Of a stretch of DNA of 64,000 nt, positions 13,466 through 61,371 are shown piece by piece. The position numbers and the translations under genes were made by a program. This stretch comes from Selaginella moellendorffii (Eukaryota; Plantae; Lycopodiophyta), in the NCBI RefSeq assembly GCF_000143415.4, contig NW_003314428.1, positions 1 to 64,000 of the forward strand, read 5' to 3'. Positions within the stretch are counted from its first letter, which is position 1. Every line of letters starts with the position of its first letter. A model generated the notes under the pieces. It was given only the letters and a program-made list of their open reading frames with translations. It searched no databases and was not told the origin of the DNA.

Positions 13466-13554
13466 ACATGCAAGTAAACCCAGAAGAAAAAGAATGGTCA
13501 AGATGGCTTGTGAGCCAAGGAAATGGCAATCTCCCTAACCAAGGCTTAACCAAG
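13466..13554 (+). pseudogene. Relic of Helitron PIF1 helicase
   Basis: MQVNPEEKEWSRWLVSQGNGNLP matches MRVNSEEKEWSRCLVKLRNGNLP at 55835-55905. Confidence 0.85.
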
Positions 13555-20889: not shown

Positions 20890-20928
<39 letters not shown>

Positions 20929-23040: not shown

Positions 23041-23299
23041 GAATGACAGGTTCATGGAAAATTTTGACCCTAATAGATCTAACTACAATGCAGACTACCT
23101 TCCACAGATTTTATTGTGAGAATGAAGTGGTCAGTTATATAGATCTCCAAAAAGTTTTAATGCCACATTAAACTCTCAAGGGCATTCATGTATAAGCTAA
23201 ACACAGTGGACATCCTTATTTAATGCAAATAGTCATTCAATGTATTTAACTCCTTGATAGTCTGCAAGAATAATGACATATATTTATTCAATGACAACT

Positions 23300-26200
23300 A
23301 ATGTTGTGTTAATTTGTCATAGCTATTGAAATAATTTATCATGGGAAACTGTGTTGACTAAGTTTTATATATCAAGACAATCCCCTATACCATATTTTTG
23401 AATTGTCCATGAAGTTGTGAGTTTCATTGCTATAGCTATCATGCATCTATTGTTATAGGATAAAATGTGATGAGCACATAGTGCATTAGGAAGTCATTAT
23501 TTGTTACTGAATATTTGTTTCATTCCTCTCTAAGAAGGAACATTTGTCCCATCAACTACACCCTTTTACTCTTTATAGTTGCAAATCTAAAAGAATGCCC
23601 TCTTGTGCCAATGATTCCTTCTTCCAATTAATACATCATTTTAGCAACACACTTGTGAGATATGTTTACCCTCTATCATAGGTTCACTTTAGTAAAAAAG
23701 AATACCTTTCCAAAGTAGTTTATCAACTATTAAGCTTAATTCCAGCAAGTAAAGGCAAATTGAAAAACTGTTACCAAGAATATATATTTTGAAATAGGGG
23801 CTAGATTAAAGTAAAGTAAGGGAACTTCATATGAGAAAAATATCCTTGAGAAAATAAAATAAAAACTGTAAGTATTTGAGTTTTGATTTCTTATTTACCC
23901 ATCACTCAAGTTAGTGATATAACTTCCTAGATGCCCAAAGTTAGATAACTTTTTGAAAACCTTATCATGCAAATATGTTAGCTTAGTAAATCCTATGGGA
24001 CTTTCTTGTGGATTTCTTTTATTTCCAAGGTCAAACAGTAGGAACATCAAGATTACACTTCAAGAATGAGACTTCTTCAAAAGAGAATATAATTTTTACT
24101 ACAACTTACTAATGATCCATCCAAGCTAATAATTTGAAACATATGTTATTCATTTTTATTCATATTTTGGGTTTGTGTTTTATATATGTTCTTTTATAAA
24201 AAGTGACTAATTTATTTTCATGAAACATTAAAACCATAATTACATCTATCCATAAATTAAATTATTTTAAGCATGTAGCTTAATTTATAGTTGTAATCCA
24301 TAATATAAAATTGTAAGTTTAAAGCTGATTAATTTAACTTTTAAATCACTTGTAAAAATTTTATTAGAAATATTAAATAAAGCTAAATAATGTTATGCAG
24401 AAGATAAAAAAATATTATTTTTTATTCTTTGAATTTACTCTCACTGACAATTCACCTAAAATCATAATTATTTTTTATTTTTTAAATATTTATTTTCAGA
24501 TATGACTATTTGATTTTAGTTTGATTTGTTTAATGATTTAGTATAAATAAAAATTGTTTAATGTACTCTTAAATATCTCTTCTTTCTTTTCAAATGTTCT
24601 TATGAATATTTTTAATATAATATAAGTTTTATCAAACAACTCATTAGTATAATGTTATAATTTATAATTTTATATTATTCTTTCAGCTATTAACTATTGT
24701 TTTATTTTATTTTAAATCTTCATGTATCTGGGATATAATCAAGAAATGGATTTTATCTTTCAATATGTATGAGATAGCTTATACCATATTAGATACCATG
24801 TTATTAATGAGACATGAATGCATAATTTTATTATAAAGCATTAGTATAGGTTTATCTTAAAACTTTACATGAGCTTTATGTTTTGTTTCAATTTTGTATT
24901 ATATCAATCATACCTAAGCATAGGGAAAATATCGTATTAGTTCAAATGGTAAATTAAGTATTTTATAAAAAAACGTTAATGGTCCCGAAATAGAGTAAAA
25001 TTATATGTCACATTTGTGAGAAAAATACAACTCAGCCTGTAAAGATAGAAAATCTATTTTATTAAATATTTATATTAGATATTCTTTTAAAAATATTAAT
25101 ACATGTGTAAAACCTTTCTAACCAGAATATAAGTTACTAATAGATCAAGAGTATGTAACACATTTTGTAAGTTATAATATATAAGATAACTACTACAAAA
25201 GTTAAATGATGAAGAGAAAAAATATTTGAGAAAGAAAAACTTAGAATAAGAAGAAAGAACTTTAATAGAAATAAAATTTTAAATATTAAAAAGACTGGTC
25301 TATACGAAATTCTCATGAAAAGTGATTTAGGTTAAAAATTAGTAGAGCAACTCTAAAATTAAATATCTAGATTGTAACCCTTAAAGTTGAAAATTATAAA
25401 CTATATTTCATTAGGATTATATTTAGGTAATATCATGCTAGAAGTTATAATTTCAAAATTTCTAAGGAACTTTGAAAGTTTAAGAAAAATTCTGCAAGAT
25501 TGTCTATTACTGAAGGATTTTAAATCATATATAGCTAAATAGCTAAAAAATTTAAATATAAAAATTACTATTAAATTATTCAAAAATGCTTACAATTCAG
25601 CAATTATCTAAAGGAGAACATTATTATAAACAAACTTAGATTATAAGAAATATTAAAAAATTTATTAGAAACTTACATCTAGCACATTCATATTTATATA
25701 ATCATATTTTTTATTTTTAATAATATATTTAATATAATATAATAATATTCTCAAAATATATTAAAATTGAAGTAAAAGTTTTATTTTATTTTATTTTAAA
25801 ATAATATGTATTGTTGTTTCAACATTATCATTTGTGAATAAAGTTTTTAAATTTTTCATTCTCTAAATTTTATTGTTGATATGTTCATTATAAAGAACAT
25901 AAAAATAAATAAATAAACTTAGATCTAACATATTACAATATACAAGAATAATATAATGACATTTTTTAATTTTTAAAGTATAACATAATATAATTATTAA
26001 CATATAATATATACTTTAAGGTATTTCCTAAATGAATTTCTTATAAAAACTTACAATTCACATATATAGCTTTGATTTACATTAATTTTAAGTTTGATAT
26101 TTGTCGAGGATTTTTATAAGTGAGAATAATTTTCTTAAGTCTTCAAAAGAAGAGTTTTCTACAAAATTAATGATATTTTTGAGATGTTCTTAAGAATTGC

Positions 26201-29200
26201 ATGTTTGGAATATATACAAAGATTTCTCTAAATAGCAAAATACAATACATCTTTATGAATATCTGCTTTTGTCGTTCTGACCTTGTAAGCATTGGTTTGT
26301 AGTCAAGCAAAGCCACAAAGGCTACAACAGGCAGCTTCTATTTAACTACTTATTAGAGCAAGAAAATATCATGCTACAGCTTACAGTTTCTCATTCCCTA
26401 GACATTCCTCAGATGCCATCCAGAGGAGGTTAACACTTTAGAGCCTTACAAGCACCTCATAAATTTCCCTTAAAGAGATGATGTGCAGTTCTATGGTTCT
26501 TTAAGAATACCTGCCAGTTTGCATCTGTCTTGAACATGTCTTCGTTAGGTCCATTGGAGCAAAGGGTAAACATAAATGCAGAGTTTTCATAAATAGCATT
26601 TCCTTCCAAATACAGAAGTGACAGGGATGAATTAGAATAATAGAGGCATGAGAATACATAGGATATCATCTTGTATGAGGTACAATTCACTAGAATACTT
26701 TTATCTTTTTATACTTACAGACGTTTGAAACTTTTACAGAATAGTCTGGATGTGGCCTAAAGAAGAAAGATTGTATGAAGGAAAGTTTGTATGAAATTGT
26801 AAATGTTTATCTTCACTTTCTCGAGCACATCAGGATTTTGCTTTAGGAAACCATCAGCCATCGAGTTGTGACCAGCGTTTATGTACATGTTGAGCATGTC
26901 TATGATTTCAGCGCTTCCAGAGACTCTTCTTTGTCATCCAGCTCATCCATGAGCAACAAAAGAATGCTTGTTTCCTGTGTCTTTCTAGAAGCTCTTCGCT
27001 GGTTGATCAGGTCCTGGATAAGCTTGATGACCTTTCACCTGGCCTGAGAATGGGAAAACATCACAAAACTATGTAAGACAATGCATATGGCTTTTACCTT
27101 CAAGGCTTTGTTGTAGGTAGTGTTGGGGAAGTTGATGGGGAAAGCCTGAATGCCTTGGTTGACAATGTAGTACAAGGAGAAAATCTCATCCACATCGAGA
27201 CTGGAGTCTTTCCTATATAAAATGTAGAGGACAGTTAGATACGTGAACTGTCATATCAGAAAAAACCAGTATCAACGAGAAAATAAGACAGAGAGGAAGT
27301 AAACATCACTTACCCTTCTCATCTCGGTAAGAAGAACAATCTTATGCTCCGTAGGCCACCTTGCAAGGCATGCTGTTGTAGGGGCACATACTGCTTAAGA
27401 GCTTTGGGATTGTTCACAGTGACTCAGTAAGCTTCTGGAGCTTCAAGTGCTCGCTTCAGTTAATCTTGCAAACAGATTTCGTCCAATGAGCACAACAGCG
27501 CTCTTTGGCCATCCTGTCTCAAAGCTGTCTTTGGAGAGCACGAATTTGCATGCCTCTGGTGTGGCAACCAGGACGGTGGGCTGCTAGAACAGAAATGCCT
27601 TGTAAAACCCACTCGATTATACCTGAAACCAAGAAGTGACCCATGAAAGAGTATGGTAACCCAGACTTGAAGGCTCTGAGAAAAGCAGCCATGTTGATAA
27701 AGACGGGCCATCCAAGCGGACCCGGTGGAAGTGGAGGCTGTCCCGGCTTTAGCACCGGCTCATAGTACCACTTGTGTAAAAATCTCGAGAATGTCGGCAA
27801 ACAGTCACTGCCATGTTGCTTTCCAGTGATAGAGGAGGAAGAACCCCATAATGGTACAGCGTTGGCACTCAACTATGGTGTCTGATTAATTGAGCAGCCA
27901 GTCACGTTCATATTAGTGGCTCCAGTGACGATAACTCGAGAGCACCACTGCTGTATTCGCAGTGCACTCCTCGTTGGGAAATTTCAAGCAAATACTGGAT
28001 ATTTTGATCGGCTCCAAAACTGTAAACACAAAATTTCAGGATTGTATCCCCACTGCAAGAATATGGCAACCATAAATTCTCTGCCTTTCATTATTAGAGC
28101 TCAACACTGAATCTCAGTAGTTTCCAATCAAAAGAACCAAAATAAATAAATCCCAGCCTTTCTGCCACTCCTGGGAATAAGAAGGGAGACCTGCAATAGG
28201 AAAACCAGGCTGTAAAACACACAAGCACCTCCAAAAGCTCATTCATTGGAAATAAGAACAACTACTTTTTCTAGAATTCGACATATTCTACTTTACCATA
28301 AATTACCTGGACACAGTGTCATGAGTTTAAGGTTGATTAAACCTGCAATCCTTACTATTATGTGCTGAGATTACTTCATTTTCACATTTTTACATCTTCA
28401 TTTTCCGATCCATCTTTTCTCCTACAGAAACATCAAACATCAGTAAGTGATCCACATCAATGAGAAAGAAAAGTGCCACAAAGATATCAGAGTCAATAAC
28501 AATAAAAAGAATAGTTGTATTGATTGTGAGCCATTAGCTTGAATGCCACAGCAGTTTGTAAAAATAATCACAAGACTGGATGTGTAGTTTACAATGGCAC
28601 AAAAGGGAAGAGACCTCTCTTACCTCACTCATTTGATCGAGAAAAACATGACTTGTCATCTTTCTCTCTGAAACATACACAAAGTGAGCAAATGAAAGGA
28701 GTTGAGAATGTAAAGGCACATATATCTGGTGAGCTTGATGACATAGCAAAAGTGTACATGACAACATCAATCCTAGAGGTCCCACCTCGATCAGGCTGCT
28801 TGCATTATAGAATTGCTGCTGGATCATCGCTGCCATCTTCACTCGGACTGGGACTCAGCTCAAAAGTAACGATGTTTGTCGAAATAAATGCTACTTTCTT
28901 CATGAATGACAAATATCATTGGTGTTATTCAGACTGAGAAGGACCGTCTCCATTATAAAGCCACACTAATAAAAAAGAGCATAAGTGAAAGCAACGGAAA
29001 ACATGAGAGCAATACCAAGAGGAAGCAAGAACGAATGTTGGAGTTCTGTACTTGTGTTTGCAAGTGAATCCAAGCGTTCCCTTGCTGGCCTGGCATACTC
29101 ACAAGAGGAGGACAACAAAAGGCCTCGTCCAGTAGTTTTATCATTGGTGCCGCCAAGGTTTCACTGCCACCAAGGCCAGCAAGCCCAATTTCCGTCCAGC

Positions 29201-30311
29201 TCTCGCCTAAAGAGATTGAAGGATTTTGCAACTTCTACCACATTCTGTTCATCATTTGGTTTTACTGTTACTTTGAAAGATTGAATCAGCAACTCACCAC
29301 AGCTGAGAACAGTTTGAACCAGCTACGTTCTGGCACATAAGAAAATTGGTATGCTATTCAGATGGAATCACGTCAAGGATTGAGCAACTGAAACTAAGCT
29401 TTTCACCAAGGCAAGAACAAATAAAAAATGTAATAAAATTACCAGTCCTTCCCCCTGGGTCAAGCAGATAAATTCTAATTGCTGACCCACTGCATTGGCC
29501 AGTGCCGGGTGCTTCCTGGCCTGAGTGGCATGACACAAGATCAGATCACCCGAAAGAACACAAAACCTGAGGAGTTACCTGCTAATTTCCAGAGCTTTCT
29601 CATGGAACCCAAGGAGAGCCTCTTCCCGCAATAGTCCACTTTCTTTTTTTATTGAAACGACCAAGGAAACAAACAGCCTGTCAAACACACTTGAGGAGAG
29701 TTACTTACCTCCTAAACCTGATCAGCTGCTGATGGTGAACGTATCACCTGGCTCTTTTCAATCTTGGCATATGCAACTTACTGTCCTTGGCAAATAAAAA
29801 GGTTCTGCAGGATGCTCGTCAGTGCTCTGGTATGGAGCGCTGAACTTGTTGACCACATGCAAACCAGCCAGTTCTCGCCTCTCTAGGATGTTCCTTTTGA
29901 CAGAAGAATAGTACGCAATGGCCAGCTCAATCCAGGGCATTGGAATTTGAAGACATCGCAGCCAATTCTTGCATCTACAAGAACAAACAATGGAGGCTGA
30001 AGTGGAATCCAGAAAAGCTTACCTTCCATATACCAACTTATAGCATGGAAGGAGAGTCCCGCAGCCAAGTTGTGACACAGACAGAGAGAGAGAGAGAGAG
30101 ACAGACAGAGCTTGCAGCTCACAATCTGCCCTAAAAATTTGAACGTCATTAAAATCACATTGAAGCGTTGCCACTTGATCTATGCCGTCTATTTGAAGTT
30201 TTTGAATTTGAACCATTAGATTATAAGCATATTCATAAATAATATTCTAAAAATGGAATAAAAGACGCCGGATGCCATATGCCAATAGCACGTTTAAATA
30301 AGGGAGTAAGA
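23300..30311 (-). mobile_element. Helitron H5 (5' end at 30311; 3' boundary uncertain)
   Basis: The minus strand reads TCTTACTCCCTTATTTAAACG followed by the 5' cassette and a CT microsatellite, directly after the CTAG of H6. Cargo and an AT-rich tail follow. Confidence 0.65.
26815..27785 (-). pseudogene. Captured CYP88 (ent-kaurenoic acid oxidase-like) cytochrome P450 fragment
   Basis: Translates WYYEPVLKPGQPPLPPGPLGWPVFINMAAFLRAFKSG, PTVLVATPEACKFVL and FETGWP, with introns and disablements. Confidence 0.8.
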
Positions 30312-33300
30312 CTAGCAAAAGTCCCAGCTACGCTGGGAGCATCGTGTTTATTCTTGATATTTTAGTATTTCAAAAAGTTGAAATCATAATTATAATTTTA
30401 ATATAATCATAATTATAACATACATAGTTAACATAACATAATATAATATTTATATTCAAAATCCCTTCTACAAATATAACATAATAAATAATATAATAAA
30501 TTTAACTTATAACATAATATAACATTTAAAACTCTGAGTGCTGCATGATCTTCTATAAATGGAATTTTTCACTGTGGGATTCCATGGCCAGATAAGTCAA
30601 TTAAAAATTGAGGCTTGGTAACTATTTTTTTATTTGAAATCTCCATATAATTGATCTACAATTTTTCCTCTTAATAAAAAATGTGTTTCTTAAGTACACT
30701 AAAGTATAATGATTTCAAAAATAAAGATTTAAAACTCACTTAAACTATATACATCTTATAAAATTAAAAAAATATAACAATTTTTATGGAATTTTATTTT
30801 TCATCTCTTTAGACTGAAAGTTTTGGAATTTCATGATACTAAGTGATAAAAATTACTTTTATGTGTTATATTTTTTAGAAGAATTTCAAAATTTTACATA
30901 TTTATCTTTGATATTNNNNNNNNNNNNNNNNNNNNNNNNNNNNNNNNNNNNNNNNNNNNNNNNNNNNNNNNNNNNNNNNNNNNNNNNNNNNNNNNNNNNN
31001 NNNNNNNNNNNNNNNATATTTAATATTAGAAGTATTCTACTTTATATCATTAGCATTATTTCTGTATGTGTTTTTTAATAGAGAGAATGCTAAGAGGATT
31101 ATAATTAAAGTTTGAACCTGTATAAAATTAACCATACCATTTGTTAACCATTTGTTAACTTGTATGGTTATGCTAATGTTATGTTAAATATTCTTGAGCA
31201 AGCCTGCCTTAGAGGATACTCATTTTCCACAAGAATTGTATTATATGCTAGATTATGCTATTTCCAGAAATCCTGCCAAGAGAGAAAAAGAAAAATTATC
31301 AAAGAATCTGATAATTGACTAACAAAGAGAAAGGTACTGACTACTTGTAGTGAGTTGTCACAGAAACTTGTGATCTAGCAACCCTAGAATGCATGGTCAA
31401 TAGAGATATCTGAAAAAAACCCTACATGCTAAAATTACTGCTATTGGCAATATATTCAATCACACTCATCCAAGGCACAAATCCCAGCTTTGCTGGGAGT
31501 GTCATGTACATTTTTGTTATTTAGTAATTCTGAAAAGTTCATATTCATCTTTATATTTGAAAAGTTCATACTAATCATAACATACATAACAATTCTAATA
31601 TAAAAACACACATCAGAGATATTTAGCACCTTTAGTGGTTTGGACAAGACTGCCAATTTGGGATATATCATCATTCATCATACAAGTGTAATTAACTTTT
31701 ATAATGTAGTATCAGAAATTAGATGGAGATATAGAAATATAAGTAGCTTTACATATGACAATTCATTTTCTTGACATGACAAGCCAGTTTCCATGTGTTC
31801 TTAACCAAACTCTAGTTAAAAAATCAAATGAGAATATCTATTAGATATCAACTGCTATTGTACAAATTATGTGTAGTACTAAACATCCAAGAGCAGCATT
31901 AACAACACTGATGCTAAGTGGTGGCAGAATTAGGAATGTCATATAACTTTGGTAAATCACCATAAATCATCATGGTAAATCACCATAGGATAAAGGGTGA
32001 AAACCACATATGTTACAATAATTTCTCATACACAGGATAAATGCTAAACTGGTCAACTCATTATATTGAGAACTAACTTTTTATGTGTCATGAATCTATT
32101 ATAGAGAATTAATTATCATTATATAAGATCACAGTTACCATTAATAATATTTTTTGTGATTGAGTTACTCTAGAGTAAATATATATTTACAAACACTTCT
32201 TGATGCATCATAGTTATTTATAGTTAGATACAGAACTTTTAGCTATAAAAATTTCCAAATATATATTTTCTGGGAGTGTCATGTACATTTCTGTTATTTA
32301 GTAATTTCTAAAATTTTATATTCATCTTTATATATAAAATGTTCATATTAATCTTAACATGCATAACAAACTTTTCTGAAACCTTTATCAAAAGGCTAAC
32401 ACTATTAGTCATAGTTTTTAAAAAAATAGTCTACTTTTGTAATAATATGCAAAAAGGAGAAGATTAATGGATGAATCATGAGCTAAAAACCCCACTTTTA
32501 TTAAATAATTAAATTAATAATTAATTAATCATAAATTATATAGTATTTATTAATATATTATCATTCTTGTCTGAAACTATATAATAGTGCAATAATGATT
32601 TGGAAATATTTAATTAATTTAATTATTTTAAATGAAAATATCAAATAATATATTATTATATTCTTTGTTGATAATATTCTACTTAAATATTTTATTTTAA
32701 TATTATAAATATTCTTTTATGAATAAATATACTTTAAATGATTTTATAATTCTTCACTTTACTTTCTTATTAAATTTTCAAGTTTTAATAGAATTGGGCT
32801 TTCAAAGAATTCTTTCTTTATATTTAGTAAATTTTAGTCAAGCTGATATAGAAATATTATATTATCATTTATATTTTGTTACTTTAGTGGTGTTAGTAGT
32901 GTTTCAAATAACATTTTTGGAATTATTTTAAAAAAGCCCAACCGTCTAGGGTCAGAGACAATTATACAATTACATGGTTATTTGATCAAAGAAAAGCTAG
33001 AATGTTTTATATGGAGTTTCTTATATTCCTGTATGATATATAAATAGAAATACTATAATTATAAAATGTTTTTGGTTTTCTTATGTAAAAAAAAAGGGTA
33101 GTTGATGTACCTAGATTATACTTAGATATTTGGGATATTCTACTATCTAATAGTTGTTATTCATTAAGATTAGTCTTTTATTTATAATTTTGAAATGTGT
33201 TTAGAATTTATAGACTTTCCCAAATACATATTGTTTACTCTAGTTTATTCTAACATCTAATAATTGATATACAATAATATTAATCTTGCAAACTAAGTGT

Positions 33301-36300
33301 TTCTCTATGTAACACACTGTTATTTCATGTTATATATCTGTGTTTGCCATAACAGTTTTTAAGTAACACAATTATCACAATGAAGGTTGACACTCATATT
33401 CTTTACTGTTCATATATACTTTTTTGATATTTCATAGGGCTTGATCTTCAGAGATGCCAAGTAGCATTGGATACCATTCCATTGCATGTCCCACAACCAG
33501 AGCAAAATCACCATAAGACAATAACAAGCCTCAGCCTACTTTGGTCATATTATAGCAATAGATCATGGNNNNNNNNNNNNNNNNNNNNNNNNNNNNNNNN
33601 NNNNNNNNNNNNNNNNNNNNNNNNNNNNNNNNNNNNNNNNNNNNNNNNNNNNNNNNNNNNNNNNNNNNNNNNNNNNNNNNNNNNNNNNNNNNNNNNNNNN
33701 NNNNNNNNNNNNNNNNNNNNNNNNNNNNNNNNNNNNNNNNNNNNNNNNNNNNNNNNNNNNNNNNNNNNNNNNNNNNNNNNNNNNNNNNNNNNNNNNNNNN
33801 NNNNNNNNNNNNNNNNNNNNNNNNNNNNNNNNNNNNNNNNNNNNNNNNNNNNNNNNNNNNNNNNNNNNNNNNNNNNNNNNNNNNNNNNNNNNNNNNNNNN
33901 NNNNNNNNNNNNNNNNNNNNNNNNNNNNNNNNNNNNNNNNNNNNNNNNNNNNNNNNNNNNNNNNNNNNNNNNNNNNNNNNNNNNNNNNNNNNNNNNNNNN
34001 NNNNNNNNNNNNNNNNNNNNNNNNNNNNNNNNNNNNNNNNNNNNNNNNNNNNNNNNNNNNNNNNNNNNNNNNNNNNNNNNNNNNNNNNNNNNNNNNNNNN
34101 NNNNNNNNNNNNNNNNNNNNNNNNNNNNNNNNNNNNNNNNNNNNNNNNNNNNNNNNNNNNNNNNNNNNNNNNNNNNNNNNNNNGGAAAGCATGAGAGTGA
34201 GGCACTCACTACTTAGCACGTCGCTTGGATTAGCTCGTTGAGCTGGGTGTGAAGATATTTGGAATTCACCAGTGGACATCTTGAGCAGAGGCTGCCAGAG
34301 CAATTGTAGTCGGGTCTTTGGCAACTGGAGAGCTCAATCAATCTCTTTGGCTGAAGTTACTCTAGATTATTTTTCAGTGGCTCCTCGATATTGATATCGA
34401 TAAGATCGTTTGCTGGAAGGATCTCCTCAAGATCTTTGCGGACCAGTGATCGAACAGAGAGGGGTGCTCGGCTGTGATGTGTTACCACCACCACATTCTG
34501 CATAAACCCTAGCCTTAACCATTCCATCTCGTGGCCACTCTAGTCTCTGGGACAAAGGATCTAGCTCGCGGCCACTCTGGTCTCCAGGACAAAGGATCCA
34601 GCTCCCAATCCGTGGTGGAGTCCATTCCATCCTCTTCTGTGACAACTGCCTAGAGTTAACAACTATTGTATTAAAACCATGCACAACGTGTCTAACAGCC
34701 TCACTCTTGTCGAGACCCATTCTGATGAGTGCATCCAACAGCTAATCTGATCCATTGTGGAGGCAACAGCACAAGGAACTCCCGCTGAATAAAGAGCTGC
34801 CAGCCATTCTCGTGGGCCAGCACTTGCAAAACAAGTTTCATGACAAACTGTAAACCTTGGATAGCTCTGTATATTTCTGATAGCCAATTCATCAATCCAT
34901 ACTCCGCCCAAGCTAGCTGGGAAAACAAAGTTACATTTCACTCTAACCTCTTCAGACTAACCACCCTTTTCAGGTCATGCTTGGAGGTACTACAAACGAT
35001 CAATTGCCACTTCTCCTTATCCAGATCATCTCCAATAATTTTTTCTGCAAAAATGGTGAAAACAAAAAATCGATATAAAAAAGAGACCTTCCTCCAACGA
35101 TGTCCCAGTCTCTGCAGTTCCTGGGACTTTGTCAAGTCGGGAGTGGACTTGTACACGTCCATGGCTGTAACGCTTGAAAGCTGATGCCAGTCGGCACTCA
35201 TGGCAAGATCTAAAACAAAAGGGACCTCAGCAGTAGTGATCTCGTCCAGGAGGGTGCCAAGAGCTGGTCGAGAGTGATCGGCAGCCTGTTGTCGCAGCCT
35301 GGGACTCTTGTGAGCCAGATTGTGCACGATAATTACCAAGTCAAGGCTTTATATGGATCTGCTCTCAACAAACCATTCTTCAGCTGCTCTTCTTCATATG
35401 ATAGGTCCTATATAGAACCAATTGGTAAACCAATCAAAGCAGAGTAAGGAAGAAATTTTTACCTGAAAGTTAACGCCTACTGAATCTATGTATCCTACAC
35501 TGCATGAAACGCTTTCATGACACTTGATGTCTGGAAAAAAAATTGTTGATATCAGTGTTCATGCTATGCCACCACAGTGCATAATATGGAGGTCTTTCCA
35601 GCACCCTGCCATGCCACTTGATTAGTAACATACGTGATTAATTAAAAAAAGTGATTTACCTCCAAACAAGAAGTCGTACCCATTTTTAGTTTCATAGACA
35701 CGCTCTTCGTCACAGAGTTAGTGCTACATAGTATAGTAGCTTGACTTAGACCTTCCACAGAAATATTAAGACTCTTCACACCCTCACTGTCCACAAAACC
35801 TTTTCTACATGAGTTTTCAAGATTGTAGCACACCTGCACATTACCTGACGAGAATGAGCAACAAGACCTTGAGCAGCTCATCGTCTGAGGAACCAGAGGA
35901 GATGACTCAGATGCTGGAGCTGGTTGTCGTTCCAGATTGGTTCTTCACTTCTCTGGAATTTTTTCTGGGCTACGAGAAGAGTGCCTCCATGGTTTATAGT
36001 CAGGTATATTGAGTTGCCTCCCATTAATCGATGAGAAGTTCTACTGCTAACCTCTTCCAGAGTTTTGGTGCGGCTCCTTGAGAATCACTGGAGGATAATA
36101 ACCGGAGGATGCAGCACCGTCTTCTTCTTCTCCTTGCTCTTGGCTGGAGGTGCTAAGAAAAGAAGCATTCATAATTCCAGATTTACCTACCAATCCGTGG
36201 AAGGCAGAGAAAAATATAAATTGAGAAAAACAAAGAGAAAATGCCAATCCGCGAAGAATCGGGCATTGAATTCTGACCTCCAGTGGAAAATATAAGTAGT

Positions 36301-36518
36301 CTGCAAGAACAGAATCCAGGAGAGAGTACATCTGCCCGCTGCCTCTCCCGTCGCTGAATGCATTTTTTTCCAGCCCTAAAAAGCCACATAAAATTTTTCT
36401 CTGATTTGAAACGACATGACCTTCGACAATTAGATCTTGGCCGTTAGATCTCAGCATATGCTGTCGCCAGTATATGCTATTATTATACGGGCTCTTTCGT
36501 TTAAATATATGAGTATGA
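30312..36518 (-). mobile_element. Helitron H6 (both termini visible; spans two gaps)
   Basis: 5' end A|TCATACTCATATATTTAAACG at 36518. 3' end is hairpin TCCCAGC-GTA-GCTGGGA plus CTAG at 30312-30338. The 3' region is homologous to 42000-42781. Confidence 0.75.
34709..34830 (-). pseudogene. Captured HAD-superfamily hydrolase fragment
   Basis: Translates REWLAALYSAGVPCAVASTMD..DALIRMGLDK. Confidence 0.55.
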
Positions 36519-37132
36519 TGATGATAAGGGAGTATGATGATGATGATGATGATGGAGAGCCGTGACTTTTGGGATCATAAAAAATTTCAAATGCCTTTTA
36601 GGGTGGGGCGGAAAGCGATGCACGAGGAGAGAGCGTTGGTAGTGGGAAGGTACTCTCTCTCTCTCTCTGTGTGTGTGTTTGTTTCTCTGTTTGCAAAGGT
36701 TTGAGAGGCTCACGGCTTTCTCTGTGTCGCCATAGTTGTGCTGGATGATCAGCGAGAACAGGCTCGACGCCTTCCAGACTTATGCGGGGAACAAATCCGC
36801 CGGCATCCGCCTGCGCAGGTGCATTCGGTAGATCGACGTGCTCTGCTCGGAAATGCGACGAGGATTGGGAGTGAAAGGCGAAGAGGCTCTGATGGAGCGC
36901 ACGACAGGGACGACGTCTCGGACAACGAGGGGATTCACGTTGTCATCGACGACTAGAATCAAGGTTCTTCACTCTCTTGCTCGTCGCTATTCTTTTTTCA
37001 AGTCTCTCAAGTCCCTGTTTGTTCCAGGTTCTCGAGGCTGGAACCACGACTAGAATCAAGGTTTTTCACTCTCTTGCTCTTCGCTATTCAACCGGAAATA
37101 TGGTTTTGATCATGTTTTGGTGGGATCGTGCA

Positions 37133-38493
37133 GGGACGTACATCTGGAGCAAGGGACGTACATCTGGAGCAAGCCTGTGATGAAAGGAACGCACCCTTCT
37201 CCTCGGGACAGCCACAGCTCCACGGCTGTCGGGTCTAAGCTCTATGTGTTTGGTGGTACCGATGGAACCAGCCCGCTAGACGATCTCTTTGTTTTGGATA
37301 CTGGTAAGCGAGTTCAATCGATTTTTTTTTCTTGTTCTTATCATCCGATGCAGCTACCAACACCTGGGGGAAACCCGACGTTTTTGGTGATGTTCCTGCT
37401 CCAAGAGAAGGACATAGCGCATCTCTCATCGGTGACAACCTGTTCGTGTTTGGGGGATGTGGGAAATCCAGCGATCCCTCAGAGGAGGAGTACTACAACG
37501 ACCTCCATGTTTTGAACACGAGTAATATCCTGTTATCTTTCCTGGTTTTCTTCTAAACTCTTTTTTTTCCTGTAGATACTTTTGTCTGGAAGAAGATTTC
37601 TACCACTGGAGTCTCGCCTATTCCTCGGGATATCCATACCTGCTCTTCCTATAAGAACTGTTGCATTGTCATGGGTGGCGAGAACAGTGGTAATGCCTAT
37701 CTATACGACATTCATATTCTGGACACAGGTACATACATTGTGCTGGTTTTAAACTTGCGAATTCATTTGTGTTTCCAGAAACAATGGCATGGCGGGAGGT
37801 AAAGACGACTGGTGCCAAGCTGATGCCAAGAGCTGGTGAACGCAGAGCAAGGCATATTATTCTTCTATGGGGGATGTAACGAAGAGCTTGAAGCTCTGGA
37901 TGACATGTATTTCCTCGACACAGGTTGGCTTCTTCTTTTATTGACGTTGCTGCTGACAATATGGTTGCCGTTTTTCTGTGAAAAGATGCTGAGGGAGAAA
38001 GATCCATCAGAACCAAAGCTATCCATGCGTAAGGAACTTAAGAGAAGGCGGCAAGAGTATCGTGCCACGCCATTCGTGCTAGACAAGCAACGGGATGCGG
38101 ACAAGAGCTTGGTTTCATCTCACGGAGGTATCTGCAGAAAACCTTGGACCTCTCCAAATTTTCTCTGTCAAACTCATGCTACAGAGTTTCAAGCTCACGT
38201 TCAGCCGCTAGGCGAGAAGATGTTCAAGGCTAGAGTACGCGACGTATTCAACTACGGATACACGCTAGAAGCCTCCATCGATGGGAAGCTCTTCCGTGGG
38301 CTGCTCTTCTCGTACAAGCCTGGCTTTGCTCAGGCAGTGCAATCTTACATCCTCAGTTACTCTCTAATGCCAGGAAGGAAAACATCACAGGAGGAAACCG
38401 CAGGACGTCCAAAAGGCCGTAGTAAAGGCCAACCGAGCAAAGAGGAGTTCAAAGAAACCATGGATATCCATACCTGCTCTTCCTATAATTATT
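37133..38493 (+). pseudogene. Kelch-repeat protein fragment (copy 2)
   Basis: Kelch motifs plus the C-terminal GYTLEASIDGKLFRGLLFSYKP of the plant galactose-oxidase/kelch family. Has an internal deletion and a 20-bp tandem duplication. Confidence 0.88.
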
Positions 38494-38704
38494 AAAGTTT
38501 CACAAAGTCTTTATTACACAGCCTCACCTTTTTTTTGTTCTTCTGGATTATCAGTTGTTTCTTCTTTGTCTACACAATACAAAAGATTGTTTTTTAGTAA
38601 TGTGCTTTTTTTTATTAGTTTACCTTCTTTATAATCTTCTGTGAACACGGACGTGAAAAGGTGATACACTACTAGAATCCTTCCTAATCGACTCTCTTTT
38701 GCAG

Positions 38705-39200
38705 AGTGGGTGCTAATACATGGTCCCTACTTTACACTTCTATAACGCAAAAGCTACAGGCTTGCCACAAAGAGGGGTATAAACTGGTGAAGTGCAATGA
38801 TTTCCCTCCTCGGAAATGGTAGTGTGGTTGCTCTAGGATCTGACTGGCCTGTAAGCCTGTCAAATACTTTTTCTTCGGCGTTACATGAATGGTTTGTCTC
38901 AAGGTGGTAGCAGTGAAGCCACTTGGAGGAATCCGCACAGCCGTGGAGAGAACACTTCAGGCTGGAGTCATCCCGAGGAAAGGATTTCTGCATGGGACGT
39001 AGTGGCAGGGTAAGAGATAACAGATGAGAAACTGAAATGCAGTTTTTTTTTTTGGATTCACAGGTACACATCCTAGGCTGTGTATGCAGCTGCATTGGAG
39101 GATTTGGTTGGGTCGCTGACGCCAGGAAAGTTTGCCAACTTTGTGGTGTTGTCCGAGTCTCCTTTTGGACAGGGCACGGGCATTTTTCCTCCAGTGGTTG
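38705..39200 (+). pseudogene. Captured amidohydrolase (LAF3-like) C-terminal fragment; mirrored at ~18430-18900 on -
   Basis: Translates VVALGSDWP, PLGGIRTAVER, IPEERIS and LVGSLTPGKFANFVVLS. Confidence 0.75.
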
Positions 39201-39329
39201 TGTTCGTTGGTGGAAATTTTGCCTTCCCTTCTTAAGGCGTTATTCCATAATTATTTGGTCTTTTAAATATAGCATATTTGCAAGAAGATTGGTGAGGAGA
39301 AAGCAGCCAGAATCATCAAGCAGCTGGTA

Positions 39330-39600
39330 AAGACCTTCAAAGAGATTTATTTGAGGGGCGTGGTTCACCAGAATCTCAAGCTCGACAACATTCTTTCCAA
39401 GCTAAACATGCATGACAAGTGGTGATCAGCACCTTTAGGAGATATCACAACAGCGAAGTACATGGCAGCTGAGGTGGTGGAGAACAAGGATTGGAGCTCT
39501 ACATGGCAGCCATCAAAATGTGGGGGCTAGGAGCAATTTTATACAAGACGCTGGGAAAGGGAGGATACCAGCCAATGGAAGCATTTGATCTCGTGTGACA
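39330..39600 (+). pseudogene. Captured Ser/Thr protein kinase fragment
   Basis: Translates GVVHQNLKLDNIL, KYMAAEVV and MWGLGAILY (subdomains VIb, VIII, IX). Confidence 0.7.
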
Positions 39601-42600
39601 GGGGGCGACCTCTGTTTCGGATCCACGGCCAACATCTTAGAAAGGAGATCCTCCGCTGCAAACAAGCAAGGACCAATCAGGTTCAGGTTCGATCAGGTTC
39701 TGCAACACCCATGGATTTGTCAAAAATTGCAGCATTAAGACCGACAAGCTGTGAAGGAGTGGTGTGAAAAGGAGTGCTCCCGGCCTTGAGAACAACTTGG
39801 GCATGAAGAAAGTTTGAGTGGCTTAAAAGAAAATGCCAGCAGTAAGTTCCTATTTCCTTTTCACCATTACTAACTTCATTTGCTTGCGTTTTTCTTTTTT
39901 GTATTCTCCGGACATCAACATCTCTTATGTCTATGGCTGGAAAACATTTTCAGTGGCTGCCGAGAACAACTGCAGAATGAAAACAAGTTGGAACGAAAAG
40001 GAAAACGAGGGAGTTGAAATGTAAAGAAAGAATTGTAAAACGTTTATTGATATATAAATAAAGATCAAAATTGAATCGAGATCTTTCACTAATCATCCAA
40101 TATATTTAAATGAAAGAGCGTCATTGATCATTGCAGTAGGTGGCTCTAATTTTATATATATATAAAATATTGGAAGTTTCAAACCAAATAATGAAAAATA
40201 TGCAGCTTATTCACAATGAAATATTTTAGATACTGCTCAAGCAACGGAGATAAAAAAAAAAAAAACAAACACAATTCTAAATGCAATGAGCAACTAATGG
40301 GTGGTCTTGATAAATTATTAAAAGAGATAAATCCCTATACTAATGCATTCACAATATTGTAAGAAATAGAGAATGAAGTGTTAAAATTAACAAATTTTCA
40401 AGGAGGCATAAGTGATATTGTAATACATATAAAAGGCAATTAGACAACTGATCCAACATAATATAATGTACTAGGTTCAAATGATTTTAAACATTTAGTT
40501 GTACAAAGATGGTATTCATTGATGAATTTTTTTATTATGTCACTATGTACGATATATTTAAAACAAAAAATATGTTCAATATGTTTAAACATGTATTATC
40601 AAATCAATCATATACTCTTTCTTCTATAGAATAAAAACTTTATAGAACAAAGAGTATCTGATTAATTCAATGCTACATTATTAAAATTAAACATAATTTT
40701 TTTTACAAAGATGGTATATAGTACACACAATAAAAGATATACTCTAAAGTTAAAAGTAAATAAAGTAGTGACTATAGAAATGATATATTTTATAACTTAA
40801 AATAGAAGAGTTGAATAGCTCCAGCTATTATATCTTGTAAATAAGTTATACTTTTATCATAATCTTATGATTTTTAACTTTATGATATTGCACAAATATG
40901 AGACTATATCTAAGCTAATAGACCACTCAATATGAGTAGATTCATTGATGAATGTGTAATAAGTCTGTTATTTACACTAATAATTTGTGCATTGATACAT
41001 GGAAAACAGATACATAAAATATCATTGAGACAATATTAGACACAATACAAAAGGCTACCATCTTAAAAAATGTGATTCATCATCACTTAAAATTTTATTT
41101 TTAATAAAGCAATCAATGGACCATTTTTTATTTTCTGATATGTTATGGTTTTAGAAAAAAAACAATATTATGAATCATCAATACCATAATATCAGGATAA
41201 AAACATAACTTTCATTGAAATTTTTTAGCCTCAATGTAAATTTATATAAAAATAAATTAAACATAAAGGTAATAATCTTAATTCATTTTAGCATTCTCTC
41301 TATATAAAAACATATACACAAAGAATCTTAATGATATAAAATATAATACCTTAACCTTTAGATAGTACTTCTAAAAAGCATAAATGTAAATATTATGAAG
41401 GGAGAGGATATCGAATACAAATATGGAAAAAATAATTCTAAAAAAAATATAATGTAATTTTAAAGAATATTTTTAAATAAATTTTAAAAAGTACTAAATA
41501 TAATAAAAGAAAAAATAAATTATCTAAATTATAATATAAAAAAAGTAATTTCTATAAAAATATGATATTTTCTAGCGTAAAATAGAGGAGTTAATAGTTC
41601 TAGATATTTGTTGTGTAAAATATTTTCTTATTAGTAAACTTATGGTTGGCTAAGATGTAGTCTAAGATTTATATAATATCATAAATTTTCTACCACTTTA
41701 TCCTACATTGCATTTATACATGAAAAACATAATAAGGTATAAATATGATTGAGACAACATTAGTACATGGACCATATACAGAATTTTAATTATATGATAT
41801 TAAACCTATCTATATACCATTCATGAATTTTCTGATATATTATAGCTCTAGCATAAAGAAAAGATTATATATCATCAAACCCTACTCTACCCCAGTATAG
41901 AGTAAAAAATTACCATTCATTTATCATCATAAAGTTTCAGCATTCATAACAGTGTTATAAAGCCTTAATTTTAAATATAAAAGCATGAATATAAATAAAT
42001 AATAATATTATTTCAGATTTATAAAAATAAATACAGAAATAATGTTTATGATATATAAAAGAATACTTTCTATTTTAAATATTACTCTCAAAATGCATGA
42101 ATATAAATATTAGGTAAAAAGGGAGTATCAATGATAAATATGTAAAATATTAAAAGTTTTTAAAAGAAAATATAACACATAAAGCTAACATCTTTCACTT
42201 ATTATTATGCAATTCCAAAACTTTCAGTCTGAAATGATGAAAAGAGAAACTCCATAATAATGTTTATATTTTTAAAATTTAAAAGATGTATGCACTTTAA
42301 GTGAGTTTTTAAATATATATTAAATATATTTTTAACATCATTATAATTTAGTGTACCTAAGTAACACATACTTTATTAAGAGGAGAAATTATATAGTTTG
42401 ATAAGTCATCAAATAATAAGATTTTTATCAATTATATAGAGATTTCAAATAAAAGAAAAAATTAGTTAATAAAAAATGACTCATCTGGCCATGGGATCCC
42501 ACAGGGAGAAATTCCATTTATAGAATATTCAAGACTTCAGTCAACAATCAGAATTTTAAATATAATTAAATGTACTGAGTTATATTTATTATGTTATGAT

Positions 42601-43293
42601 GTTTGTTGGTGATGGAGTCAATTGTAGAAGATATTTTTAATAAAAATATTATGTTATGCTTAACTATATATCTTATAATTATGATTATGTTAAAAATTAC
42701 AAATACGCTTACAATTCTTTGAAATTATTAAAATATCAGAAATAAACACAATACTCCCAGCGTAGCTGGGACTTTTGCTAGTACTCCCTTATTTAAACGT
42801 ACTATTGGCATATGGCATCCGGCATCTTTTATTCCATTTTTAGAATATTATTTCTGAATATACTTATAATCCAACGGTTCAAATTCAAAAACTTCAAATA
42901 GAGGGCATAGATCAAGTGCCAAAGGGGTGGCAACGCTTCAACTTTGAATTGAATGACCCTCCAAATCAAGTGAATCTTTTAGGGCGTTCAAGCAGATTGT
43001 GAGCTGCAATCTCTCTCTCTCTCTCTCTCTTGGGTGGCACTGGCTTCATTCATTCATAGTAAATTCATATACTATTTCACTCTCTTGCTTCTTCCCTATT
43101 CTCTTTTGAGGCTTAAAGTTCCGGTTTGTTCCAGGTGCTCGAGGCTGGAACCAAGAGAAAAAATAGAAATTTTCGTCCACGGTTCACTTCCTTGTTCTTC
43201 AGTTTTGCGTTTTTAATGCATTGAGAGGGATTCCTATTTTGCAGCGCTATAAACCCTGCAGTATCTCTTCTACACTTGTATTTTAGGGTAAAG

Positions 43294-44713
43294 ATGAAGT
43301 GGGCGCCTCGTCGATCCAGCGATCAGCTCCAGCAGCAGCTGCCGGGGTGCAAATGGGGCCACACCTGCAATGCGGTCAGGAATCTCATCTACATTTTCGG
43401 TGGCTGCGGCCGGGATGAGTGCCAGACCAACGACGTTCACGTCTTCGACATTGGTATAAGTTTCCTCTTCTGGGTTTTCCGGAAAATATGGTTTTGATCA
43501 TGTTTCTGGTGGGATCGCGCAGGGACGTACACCTGGAGCAAGCCTGTGATTAAAGGAACGCACCCTTCTCCTCGGGACAGCCACAGCTCCACGGCCGTCG
43601 GCCTAAGCTCTATGTGTTTGGTGGTACCGATGGAACCAGCCCGCTAGACGATCTCTTTGTTTTGGATACTGGTAAGCTCCGAGTTCTATCGAATTTTTTT
43701 TCGTGTTCTTATCATCCGATGCAGCTACCAACACTTTGGTGATGTTCCTGCTCTGAGAGAAGGACATAGCGCGTCTCTCATCGGTGACAACCTGTTCGTG
43801 TTTGGGGGATGTGGGAAATCCAGCGATCCCTCAGAGGAGTACTACAACGACCTCCATGTTTTGAACACGAGTAATATCCTGTTATCTTTCCTTGTTTTCT
43901 TCTAAGCTTTATTTTCCCCCTGTAGATACTTTTGTCTGGAAGTCTACCACTGGAGTCTTGCCTATTCCTCGGGATAGCCATACCTGCTCTTCCTATAAGA
44001 ACTGTTTCGTTGTCATGGGTGGCAAGGACGGTGGTAATGCCTATCTAAACGACGTTCATATTCTGGACAAAGGTACATGCATTGTGCTGGTTTTAAACTT
44101 GCGAATTCATTTGCGTTTCCAGAAACAATGGCATGGCGGGAGGTAAAGACGACTGGTGCCGAGCTGATGCCAAGAGCCAGGCACACAACAATCAGCCATG
44201 GAAAGTATCTCGTCGTGTTTGGAGGATTCTCCGATGATCGCAAGCTATTCAATGACGTCCATACTCTGGACTTAAGTACGTGCTCTTGCAGGTAGATTTG
44301 TTTCCTGTTGGTCTCTCATGGGGCTTTTACGTATTTTGTAGCGACTGGTGTTTGGGCGACTTCGAATCCCTCTGGTCCCGGGCCTTCTTCACGTTTTTCC
44401 CTTGCAGGAGATTCCGTGAACGCAGAGCAAGGCATATTATTCTTCTATGGGGGATGTAACAAAGAGCTTGAAGCTCTGGATGACATGTATTTCCTCGACA
44501 CAGGTTGGCTTCTTCTTTTACTGACATTGCTGCCATTCTTGACAATATGGTTGCCGTTTTTCTGTGAAGAGATGCTGAGGGAGAAAGATTCATCAGAACC
44601 AAAGCTATCCATGCGTAAGGAACTTAAGAGAAGGCGGCAAGAGTATCGTGCCACGCCATTCATGCTAGACAAGCAACGGGATGCGGACAAGAGCTTGGTT
44701 TCATCTCACGGAG
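43294..44713 (+). pseudogene. Kelch-repeat protein (copy 3, most complete N-terminus)
   Basis: Begins MKWAPR..PGCKWGHTCNAVRNLIYIFGGCG and continues over multiple exons. 1-nt deletion near 43600. C-terminus replaced by BIG sequence. Confidence 0.88.
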
Positions 44714-44757
44714 GTATCTGCGGAAAACCTTGGACCTCTATAATTTTTCACCTGCGA

Positions 44758-45427
44758 TCTCCTACTGATCCACGAGTGTTCAGTCTCACCAAAATTGTGG
44801 AAATCTCGTAAGTGATTTGATTGTGACGTATTCACTCACTTGTTGTATAGGCACTTCGGATCAGGCTGGTCTGGAGCAGGATGTGGAATACATTGTCTGA
44901 CTATTTTGTTACTGTTGGGTGTTCAAGCAATTTCTCAGTTGCTATGTATGCCATGGACTCTCTGTGGCAGTTAGCAATGAAATTGATGGATCGTGAAGAG
45001 CTTGCAAATTACAACTTCCAGAGTCAGTTTATTCGGCCTTTTGTCATCATCATGCAGAGAAGTGCCTCTGTTGAAATACAAGAATTTATCATCCGTTGTG
45101 TCTCTCAAATGGTGTGCAGCGGGAAATCTGGCTGGAAAATTACGTTTATGGTAACAAAGTTTTCAAAGTCAAGGTATCAATCCTTTATCAATTACATTTC
45201 TTTACAACTGCTGCAACAGATAGAGATAGTGGCATTGTCCATCTTGTATTTGAAACAGTAGAGAAGGTTGTCAGAGATACTTTCAACACATTACTGAAAC
45301 TGAGAGCACAATATTCACAGACTGTGAATTGCCTTGCATTCATAAACAACAAGTTTAATGACAATATCAGCCTCAACTCTCTCGCATTTCTGCATTTTTG
45401 TGCCTTAAAGCTTGGTGAAGGAGAGCT
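44758..45427 (+). pseudogene. Captured BIG ARF-GEF HDS-region fragment
   Basis: Translates PTDPRVFSLTKIVEIS and RLVWSRMWNTLSDYFVTVGCSSNFSVAMYAMDSLWQLAMK..ELANYNFQ. Confidence 0.9.
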
Positions 45428-45565
45428 GGATCTTACGGAAGATTTTCAATCATAATCTTAAGAATGATGATCTTATTCATTGACATTTTACATTATCATA
45501 TCATATTTACACATTACCTACGTAATGTGTAATATAATATAATATCAGATAATATGTATATAATA

Positions 45566-45995
45566 GGCCTGGCTATGTCACGCAGTGTCCTCTCAAGTGA
45601 CGCTAATAGTTCCTCTACAACTTCATTGTGGATTCACACATGTGAACTCTCATCTGGCATGCACACACATCATGTGGCTTCGAGCTACTGTCTATGGAGA
45701 CATTGACAGCCCAGCATGAACGCAATGAAGGGCGTTGTGGATCCCAGGGACCGCTTCAGTTGCAAGGGGACCCTTGGAGGAAACTCTACCAGGTAATATA
45801 ACTGAGGATTGATTAGTCATGATATGTTGTGTTTTGCAGTCTTGCTCTGGCCTTGGAGACTCGCACTTTGACTTGGCTGTGGAAAGTTTTGGTGACAGTG
45901 TATGTAGTGCAGCAAAATTGGTCTACAATTCTGAGCTATATATGCCTGGTGTTTACTGTTGCATAGCTAAATCACGTAGTTTTTTCACTTATGAT
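45566..45995 (+). pseudogene. Laccase fragment plus fused unknown exons (paralogue of 2165-2570)
   Basis: Contains the laccase WHAH..MWLRATVYG segment and the same downstream junction as in H1. Confidence 0.8.
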
Positions 45996-47186
45996 TTTAT
46001 TAACTATTTACATTTTACATTGACAGAATATCAAAATAAGAATCTTATGGACTTGATAGAATCCAGGCATCATAAGATTTGAAAAGTAGTTTTTATTTGG
46101 TGACCAAAGATGCATTCTACACTGAAATTCTAATGGAGCCTCTATGCTAATATCTAGATTGAATAATGAAAGTGCATATGTATCCTTAAGTCGGAGCTGC
46201 AGACAGAAATGTGAGGTGGATCAGTAGACTGGCTTACATCCTTCTCACTCTGTGTTCTTCAAATATTTTCTAGAATTATAGAGATTGTTTTGAATCAAGA
46301 GGTAAATTATAGAGATTGTTTTGTGCCACTCACTCATTTCAGAGGTAATAGTAAAGTAAAAGGTTTTTTAGTTCAAATTTTTTCTAAAATATTAGAGATT
46401 GTTTTGAATCAGAGGTGTAACATCTCAGCAACCAAACATGGGCTTTAAAGTTTTTGAGCCAATCTTGGGTTGTGTTGCAACCGATAAGAATAAGAATGCA
46501 TAAAAGCCAATGACTATTATGGGAACACACAAAATATTATGTTTATTAGCAAGATCTTATTCCAAAGGTAATAGTAAAGAAAGGGTTTTGAGTAAAAGGG
46601 CCTTCTAATTATTTAATCAGATATTTAAATATAAATTTAAGTTGAATTATATATATATAAAATTATTGAAAAATATTGAATCAAGTAAAATTTTCAAATA
46701 TTATATTTGTTATAAAATGCCATTTCTTTAAATTATTTAATACTTTAAGGGGTGTTAATAGATTTAGCTATTCTAAGTTTTTATTTCTCAAGTATTTTAT
46801 CATTTAATTTTCATAGTATTTATCTTGTATATTATAATTTATAAAATGTCTGAGATACATTGCTGAAGCATGTTCTGGTTGATAAGGTTTTAAAGGCATA
46901 TTAATTTTTTTTCAAAATATCTAATATAACAATTTTGAAAAGTGTTATTTTGAATTTGTGTTATGAAAATTCATGAATGAAAATCTAAAAACCTAATATT
47001 CTGTGAGAGGAAGAAACTAAGGTTTTAAAAGATCAGACATGTACATAGATGCCCATTGTGGCAGCAATAGTGATTATTATTTTGTATTCTACTCTATATG
47101 ACCTACTATATCTGGTATGATCTATATCATAGACTTGTAATTTTAGGAAACAATTATATTTTATGTACTAAAATTCAAATTATATT

Positions 47187-47227
<41 letters not shown>

Positions 47228-47395
47228 TAAAATACAATATTGATAATTTTAGTGATAATATTATAATACAGTATGAAAATTATACATTAATGATAATATT
47301 ATAATTTTTAATATTTAAAATTATTTATTAATTCACATATTTTTATGTAACAAAAACTATATTTATTAAATCTATTCTGTAGCAATTTTTGCCAA

Positions 47396-48967
47396 GGAAG
47401 CAGTGGTGTATAACAATCTAAACCAGCATATACACCATATAAATCAAATTGGGAGATAAAAGCAAGTAAGACTATGGAGATCAAGTGTGTAGAGGACGAT
47501 CTATGTATTCCAAATATTGTTCTTAATAGAACAAGTGTTTTAGATGCTTCTAAGCTTGGCCAAGAAACATTTATAGATGTGATTGGTGGTGTAATGTAGA
47601 TTGGACAGACAAACATTTCTCCTAAGGATTTTGGAGCATTCATGAGAAGTAGGATACTTTGTTTGAGTGATGAATCAGGCCACAGTATAGACATGTGTCT
47701 GTGGATAGGCTGAAGATGAAGGTTCAGAAATCAAGGAGAAACTTGGTCGAGGGGAGAGGCCTATTGTATGTGTGAAGGGCAGCCAAATTTCAGATTACAA
47801 TGGCAAGTCTATTTCAGTCACATGTGGCTCTACCCTTTTAGTTGATCCTGAGTTAGAAGCACAGCTGCATGAATGGATGGTTGCTAGCTACGACACAACC
47901 AGTTTTGTCCATGTGACCAACTCTTCTTCTAAAGCAATGATTTCTGGTACAAAGACAGTATCTGAGATGTTGTCTATCAACCTGAAGGTTTCCAAGTTCT
48001 CTGCTATTTTTCGTGTTATTGTCAGTGAAAGAAATCTAGACTGGTGACTTCTATTACCCAGCATGCGTGAAGGTTGTCAATGGAAGGCAAAGTGGCAAGA
48101 AGGTTACTCAGGTTTCGGAAAGTATGTGGCAATGCAACTTTTGTGACACTGATTCTAGAGATATTTGGTTCAAATATGCACTACACTTGTGTATTCTGGA
48201 CAGCACTAGACATATATGGGCAGTTGCATTTGATGATGCTGCTAATAAAATTGTAGGGATGCCTGCATATAAGCTGATGATTAAACTGTTTTTTTTTTTT
48301 TTTTGCCATAATGGACTCTATTCGATCAAAGATGTACAATCTGAAGATTCATTGCAAGCTCGAGAGCTACAGAGATACCGAGAAATTGAAGTTTTTATAG
48401 TTGAACTTGACACTTTAAAGAAAAAATGTGCAAGAAAACAAAAAAGTATGTTTTATTTCTTTCTACTATTGTTTTATAATTTGTTGTGTGTGGTATCAAG
48501 TTTCTAACTATAAGCCAAGTTAGAGCTTTCAAAGCTAATGTTGTGTAGAAGTTGATGAATGTTTAAAACAATTTGTAATAATGTAATTAGTTACAAAATG
48601 TTTAAATTAACTAAGTATTATTTTTTTAATGATTTCTTTTAGTTTTATGCATGCAAAACAGTTGATTCATGATAACATTATTACATTTTTTTTCTCTGTT
48701 TCATGTTAAGGGAGAGAGTTCTAAGAAGCTCATGATCAATGAGATGCTAATAAAGGATATCAACAACCACTGCTACCGATGGTCTTTTCGCACCACCAGG
48801 TGACACACAAAGGGAAACTTGTATTCTTTGAAACAGGCACAGCTGGATGTCTTATGTCAGTTGATGTTGCTAATGCAGAAAGTTCCAAAATACATATTGT
48901 TGAGTTTGGCCAGAATGCAAAGCATCTTTCAAGCGAGATTGAGCAAGGCAGTGTCTATATATTTTCA
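47396..48967 (+). pseudogene. RPA70-like gene, second copy, with segments permuted
   Basis: Homologous to the reverse complement of 14380-15870. The C-terminal part (47396-48619) precedes the N-terminal part (48672-48967). Confidence 0.85.

Positions 48968-61333: not shown

Positions 61334-61371
<38 letters not shown>

Follow-up and report, generated by a model that had tools for sequence, protein, structure and literature searches.

Helitrons and captured gene fragments in the window

The stretch of Selaginella moellendorffii DNA analyzed here (64,000 nt, hereafter the window) is dense in non-autonomous Helitrons whose cargo consists of kelch, Sec7-HDS, RPA-C and Tpt1 gene fragments; the homologs of the captured kelch-gene fragment all belong to S. 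moellendorffii. The window was compared with 11 loci (L001 to L011) of assembly GCA_000143415.2, giving a sample of 271 kb in all in which the elements are 75-99% identical; the loci were picked via one cargo gene, so the sample is cargo-biased. In the middle of the window, a compound run of TCA units directly precedes a full Helitron 5' end. The relevant features are the following (a vertical bar marks a junction or insertion point).

36538..36552, minus strand: (TCA)5, a run of five 3-nt stubs, every one identical to positions 1-3 of a Helitron 5' end; the complementary junctions are CTAG|TAC
36525..36537, minus strand: 13-nt stub TCATACTCCCTTA, equal to positions 1-13 of the H42-type leader and ending at A|T 13/14
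36519..36524, minus strand: (TCA)2, two stubs ahead of the full element, whose leader starts at 36518
30312..36518, minus strand: non-autonomous Helitron of about 6.2 kb with an H6-type leader, from 5' TC to hairpin (30337-30323) plus CTAG, with two assembly gaps inside
21333..30311, minus strand: next Helitron in the train, with an unclipped leader that opens with TCTT and has no A|T at 3/4 and a 3' end that stops 19 nt short of the terminus
21116..21332, no strand assigned: segment of about 215 bp without a paralogue in the sample, which stands in place of a 3' end together with the very start of the following leader and disrupts the train
9407..21115, minus strand: third element, with an H6-type leader lacking about 10 nt and kelch and RPA cargo, containing the empty A|T paralogue 21023/21024; left limit approximate
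36553..42781, plus strand: host Helitron of the H6 type with kelch cargo, interrupted at leader position 102/103 and ending in hairpin plus CTAG
42782..51225, plus strand: Helitron with a leader lacking exactly TCA; clipped junction 42781/42782
53530..56200, plus strand: broken RepHel gene with Helitron_like_N, an HUH-type motif and a PIF1 helicase, located downstream of the leader at 51226
10208..14323, plus strand: control, a Helitron standing alone at an A|T insertion site, its 5' end bearing a single TCA; empty site 47337/47338

Several of these features are degraded. The 30312-36518 element contains degenerate internal copies of the 3' end on the minus strand (31475-31588 and 32266-32369), as expected from end bypass, and no 3' terminus was seen in the 9407-21115 element. 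The segment at 21116-21332 joins a 3' end cut inside the hairpin to a leader without about 10 nt, and its upstream side is not an A|T junction. The RepHel gene is split into at least four ORFs and is a candidate relic of an autonomous partner; located downstream of a related leader, it might be the partner that mobilized the surrounding elements. A diverged RepHel fragment is found at L005:8844-9262.

The termini are those of canonical Helitrons. The 5' TC is present in the leader at 36518 and in the control element, whose start at 10208 is fixed by the empty site, and CTRR follows a GC-rich hairpin (7-bp stem, z -3.25) at 27 3' ends. An earlier, sequence-only reading of the window had started from the premise that Helitrons enter A|T without target-site duplication, and the empty site 47337/47338 of the 10208-14323 element bears this out, as do the empty site 21023/21024 and four other loci (for the stack, on the 5' side only). 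In five leader types a TATTTAAA core is kept that lies 11 nt from the 5' end (10 nt in the TCAAAC type); it is a candidate transposase binding site. Folding of the leaders revealed no common structure that would explain the target positions.

The TCA stack and its target site

On the minus strand, from 36552 to 36519, the stack reads (TCA)5, the 13-nt stub, (TCA)2 and the full Helitron leader, exactly as the sequence-only reading had it, and the host A at 36553 directly precedes it. The 13-nt stub shows 0/13 mismatches to the H42-type leader and 3/13 to the leader of the neighbouring element, which argues against a tandem duplication; judged by these matches, the stub is the split leader of another subfamily and not a local duplication. 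The (TCA)5 run together with the stub is identical in 26/26 positions to a stack at L009:5855. Under a first-order Markov model, which ignores slippage, the expected number of perfect (TCA)6 runs in the window is 1.7e-5, and among 271 kb there are only three ATC-class runs of at least four units, two of them located exactly at Helitron 5' ends. A metagenome pattern scan yielded 0 matches.

At the proposed empty paralogue, 21023/21024, the left context is the same and is followed directly by TTGTTT, and the site is indeed an A|T. It is, however, not host-gene DNA but the A|T at 102/103 in the H6-type 5' leader of an oppositely oriented Helitron. This leader continues uninterrupted into the same sequence in five copies at four outside loci (the leader of one copy is chimeric) and in one short-read contig, so the stack begins where the minus-strand element entered the leader of the plus-strand Helitron at 36553-42781. 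The first 102 nt of that host Helitron are absent from the window.

Could one or two stubs have seeded a microsatellite that expanded by slippage, with the compound appearance due to a short tandem duplication? TRF calls a 25-nt repeat in two copies at the stack, the host end CCA is in register with the run and an unrelated (TCA)8 is present at L009:2644. Nevertheless, the 13-nt stub derives from the leader of another subfamily rather than from that of the neighbour, and leaders that lack TCA and directly adjoin foreign 3' ends are not a product of slippage. At 2-3 units, a run is shorter than the usual slippage lengths, and such runs nonetheless recur at 5' ends; the runs are not positioned independently of element termini, most of them being located at leaders. 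We consider expansion by slippage an improbable origin of the stack.

Junctions between adjacent Helitrons

Across the window and the 11 loci (271 kb), 22 of the 27 intact Helitron 3' ends adjoin the leader of another Helitron. Nine of these 22 junctions lack exactly TCA, two lack 9 nt, one lacks 80 nt and one is reversed at about position 26; the remaining ones are three with extra TCA units (1, 1 and 4) and six that are unclipped with zero stub. The break positions 3, 9, 13, about 26, 80, 82 and 102 are all A|T in intact leaders. In total, 19-20 of the 22 junctions fall within the first 14 nt of the leader, whereas such positions account for about 0.3% of the oriented AT sites (binomial probability about 1e-43, to be read with the cargo bias of the sample and events that are not fully independent). 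No 9-nt stub in the sample matches the two junctions clipped at 9/10.

Of the six unclipped, zero-stub junctions, five involve leaders of the TCAA or TCTT type, which lack an A|T at 3/4, in keeping with a target that depends on A|T; alternatively, these five leaders might themselves have been clipped from longer starts. The combination CTAG|TCATAC was found neither in the window nor in the 11 loci. Junctions without TCA occur in at least two families, given that a second family, with the leader TCATCC and a true start fixed by an empty site, shows a 3-nt clip at L006:14739 (CTAG|TCC). In addition, short-read contigs from three samples, one of which may be the source of the assembly, contain a 3' end that runs directly into position 4 of the H6 leader. 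The suspicion that the stack is an assembly artefact of a repeat-dense, gapped scaffold gains something from the probable origin of the outside loci in the same assembly and from the stack not being bridged by a contig in a short-read comparison that passed over the repeat at 36526-36562, but clipped junctions are present in independent sequencing runs and stacks occur at the same motif in four other scaffold positions, so that this explanation is hardly credible.

Head-to-tail junctions and tandem arrays have been cited as rolling-circle products (in the available text of PMC5876387), and aberrant circle junctions occur with Helraiser; the junctions described here might accordingly be concatemers or imprecise circle junctions of single elements. 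Yet neighbours differ in leader type and cargo, and the 18 distinct combinations of 3' end and leader are compatible neither with one inherited junction nor with concatemers of a single element. Nine of the junctions are clipped, whereas circle junctions of Helraiser and of wheat Xuan1 are precise CTAG|TC in the accessible parts of the respective reports. Furthermore, three insertions into leaders are in the opposite orientation (window 36552, L003:17961 and L010:6225). The concatemer reading appears largely refuted by the heterologous neighbours and is very unlikely.

Two unusual arrangements of 3' ends were also observed: at L001:13798 (minus strand) a 3' end is followed by A and then by inverted hairpin copies, and at L007:338 (plus strand) two 3' ends lie tail to tail, about 40 bp apart.

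Stubs and clips as a probable record of insertions

The sequence-only reading had suggested a search for (TCA)n directly before Helitron 5' ends, and such stacks, of (TCA)2-5, recur at five places in the 11 outside loci (L003:2298, L003:17961, L004:9897, L009:5855 and L009:9746). Five shorter stacks also sit at leaders, beside two of the three ATC-class runs of at least four units. Outside the window, 9 extra TCA stubs compare with 8 three-base clips, the balance that insertion predicts, although the numbers are small. The (TCA)8 at L009:2644 was considered as an outermost stack and rejected, there being no leader behind it and a TCAT-rich paralogue at this place; it was left out of the stub counts. 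Lacking a leader, it is probably an ordinary microsatellite, which indicates that TCA microsatellites of the ordinary kind form in this genome as well. It adjoins a gene fragment that is Helitron cargo in L005. The (TCA)3 stack at L009:9745 starts at A|T right behind a 3' hairpin; 3' ends may therefore be targets as well, or a deletion may have joined the two.

The window stack resembles two units that are present separately in L009, namely (TCA)5-6 on an H42-type leader and (TCA)3 on an H6-type leader. The occurrence of near-identical stack-plus-leader units at unrelated L009 sites suggests that stubs can travel with a copy; if stacks move with copies, two local events would suffice for the stack in the window. 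Frequent inheritance of stubs is, however, made less likely by the single TCA at each of the two verified stand-alone insertions (window 10208 and L011:2757) and by stubs not outnumbering clips.

Under a strict local tally, nine successive insertions occurred here, one per stub, and the clips lie further left or have been deleted. Eight further elements would then be expected downstream, seven starting with TAC and one with TTTAAAC, followed by the first 102 nt of the host; CTAG|TTTAAAC and CTAG|TTGTTTAATC would lie left of the window on the minus strand. The balance of stubs and clips outside the window agrees with such a tally, as do the single TCA of the stand-alone insertions and the junctions next to the stacks at L004:9897 and L009:9746, both of which are clipped as predicted. 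At the locus itself, the 36.5 kb downstream on the same strand contain only three leaders (36518, 30311 and 21115) instead of nine, along with one intact and one broken 3' end, and no CTAG|TAC junction. The expectation that the number of stubs equals the number of downstream clipped junctions, with the series ending in the other part of the host, thus fails in this interval: eight stubs face no clean clip. The stack partners CTAG|TTGTTTAAT and CTAG|TTTAAAC are likewise missing from the window and the 11 loci. Another point against one local insertion per stub is that the same types of leader carry similar stacks at unrelated sites, in L009 and in the window. The train is disrupted and may run beyond the window, so that the count is unverified rather than disproved; all the same, nine local insertions seem doubtful.

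Three further points of the sequence-only reading concern this count. The clipped junction 42781/42782, proposed as the complementary product, does read CTAG|TAC, but this stack cannot have produced it, since it lies on the other strand. The reservation that the junction 30312/30311 is unclipped is factually right but carries less weight, as the leader there is TCTT without A|T at 3/4. As to the gaps said to hide part of the interval, a comparison of the five gap flanks with terminus libraries gave no matches and thus no sign of hidden ends.

What is supported of the insertion record as originally proposed is that stubs and clips are complementary products at A|T sites of 5' termini, as seen in the junction census; the one-to-one count lacks support at this locus. 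Two insertions at the minimum can be read off directly: one element entered the host leader at 102/103, in opposite orientation, and another entered an H42-type leader at 13/14. Any number of events between 2 and 9 fits the stack. The stack is a record of insertion history but not a proven local counter, since stubs can probably be carried along at a nicked outer A|TC and can slip, and since the train has been disrupted. Identity to the nearest paralogue was tried as an age order and dropped, the sample being too small.

Probable self-targeting of 5' leaders

Taken together, the junctions and stubs lend good support to the view that canonical Helitrons in this genome engage in real, recurrent and nucleotide-precise self-targeting that leaves TCA stubs, and we consider such targeting of their own 5' leaders highly probable. 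Since their 5' end reads TCA|T, these Selaginella Helitrons have an A|T target of their own three bases in. RepHel bound to a resident leader might nick a nearby A|T on either strand, and the nick, as the junctions suggest, would accept the incoming strand. Insertion at 3/4 would leave TCA ahead of the newcomer and CTAG|TAC behind it; because the terminus of the newcomer is again TCA|T, each insertion would regenerate the target, the train would grow at its leader end and TCA stubs would accumulate. Stubs would probably be carried along when the outer A|TC is nicked. This scheme as a whole, with RepHel nicking resident leaders, trains growing at the leader end and the stack being such a pile, appears likely, but a polarized array in which (TCA)n is a true one-to-one counter is a considerably more tentative proposition.

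Biochemical data on Helraiser, a reconstructed bat Helitron, are compatible with this mechanism. According to the available sections of the report (PMC4778049), Helitrons insert at AT without duplicating the target, and purified Helraiser protein in vitro cuts the left end on the bottom strand at flank|TC and at an internal AT, with cleavage determinants in the terminal 40 bp of the left end. The use of an internal AT of the left end as a cleavage site would, under the proposed scheme, be shared with the Selaginella elements. Unlike the latter, new Helraiser insertions are not clustered near donors, and these sections report no self-insertion (PMC4778049); this lack of local hopping counts against the proposed scheme, as do the same-strand partners missing in the window, the missing 9-nt stubs, the (TCA)8 at L009:2644 and the choice of loci via one cargo gene.

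Plant Helitron1/HLE1 elements, as known from maize, share with the Selaginella elements the 5' TC, the 3' hairpin followed by CTAG, the A|T target without duplication and captured gene fragments. Xiong et al. reportedly described head-to-tail Helitron junctions or tandem arrays in 2016. The accessible text of PMC12477314 credits Yang and Bennetzen (2009) with the finding that maize Helitrons preferentially insert in the vicinity of other Helitrons; in Selaginella, by comparison, the preference resolves to single nucleotides of the resident leader, mostly 3/4, and leaves stubs. Head-to-tail arrays in plants and bats likewise show trains in which the 3' CTAG is fused to a 5' end, but the available part of PMC5876387 interprets them as precisely joined concatemers of a single element, whereas in Selaginella the neighbours differ, junctions are clipped and some are reversed. 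Tandem dimers of R1, the P element and hobo also arise by repeated insertion at a regenerated site (10.1101/158386). In these cases the target is regenerated by target-site duplication, whereas in Selaginella the element's own terminus would supply it: the junctions lose 0-9 or more nt and show no host duplication. The accessible literature on an active wheat family and on Paramecium and Xenopus Helitrons describes no insertion into the element's own 5' end. A targeted literature search that covered few subscription papers found no description of clip-and-stub targeting, so that an earlier description is possible.

Helitron target choice is poorly understood beyond the AT dinucleotide. Self-targeting of 5' ends would explain both the clustering of Helitrons and head-to-tail trains without concatemers, and would show how new combinations of 5' and 3' ends and composite cargo originate. 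As this plant genome is very compact, insertion into their own kind might represent a safe-harbour strategy. The model makes countable predictions, namely that stubs equal clips and that break points lie at A|T, and implies that annotation tools anchored on TC will miss many clipped elements. Should the stack prove to be a counter, the order of an array would preserve the chronology of gene captures, and the stack itself would exemplify a new, transposition-driven origin of microsatellites.

Other rearrangements in the window

Several other parts of the window are rearranged. The sequence at 5717-5909 (plus strand) consists of a 3' end, a 32-nt leader piece (81-112) and a leader restarting at position 52, which amounts to a clip at 80/81 plus a short duplication. 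The region 14378-15092 is inverted relative to its paralogue at L009 20708-21432, and the copy at 47.4-48.6 kb is rearranged as well. Finally, 56316-64000 is a repeat common to L001, L003, L005 and L006 that resembles LTR-retrotransposon sequence and contains 6- and 12-bp tandem arrays at 59.6-61.8 kb.
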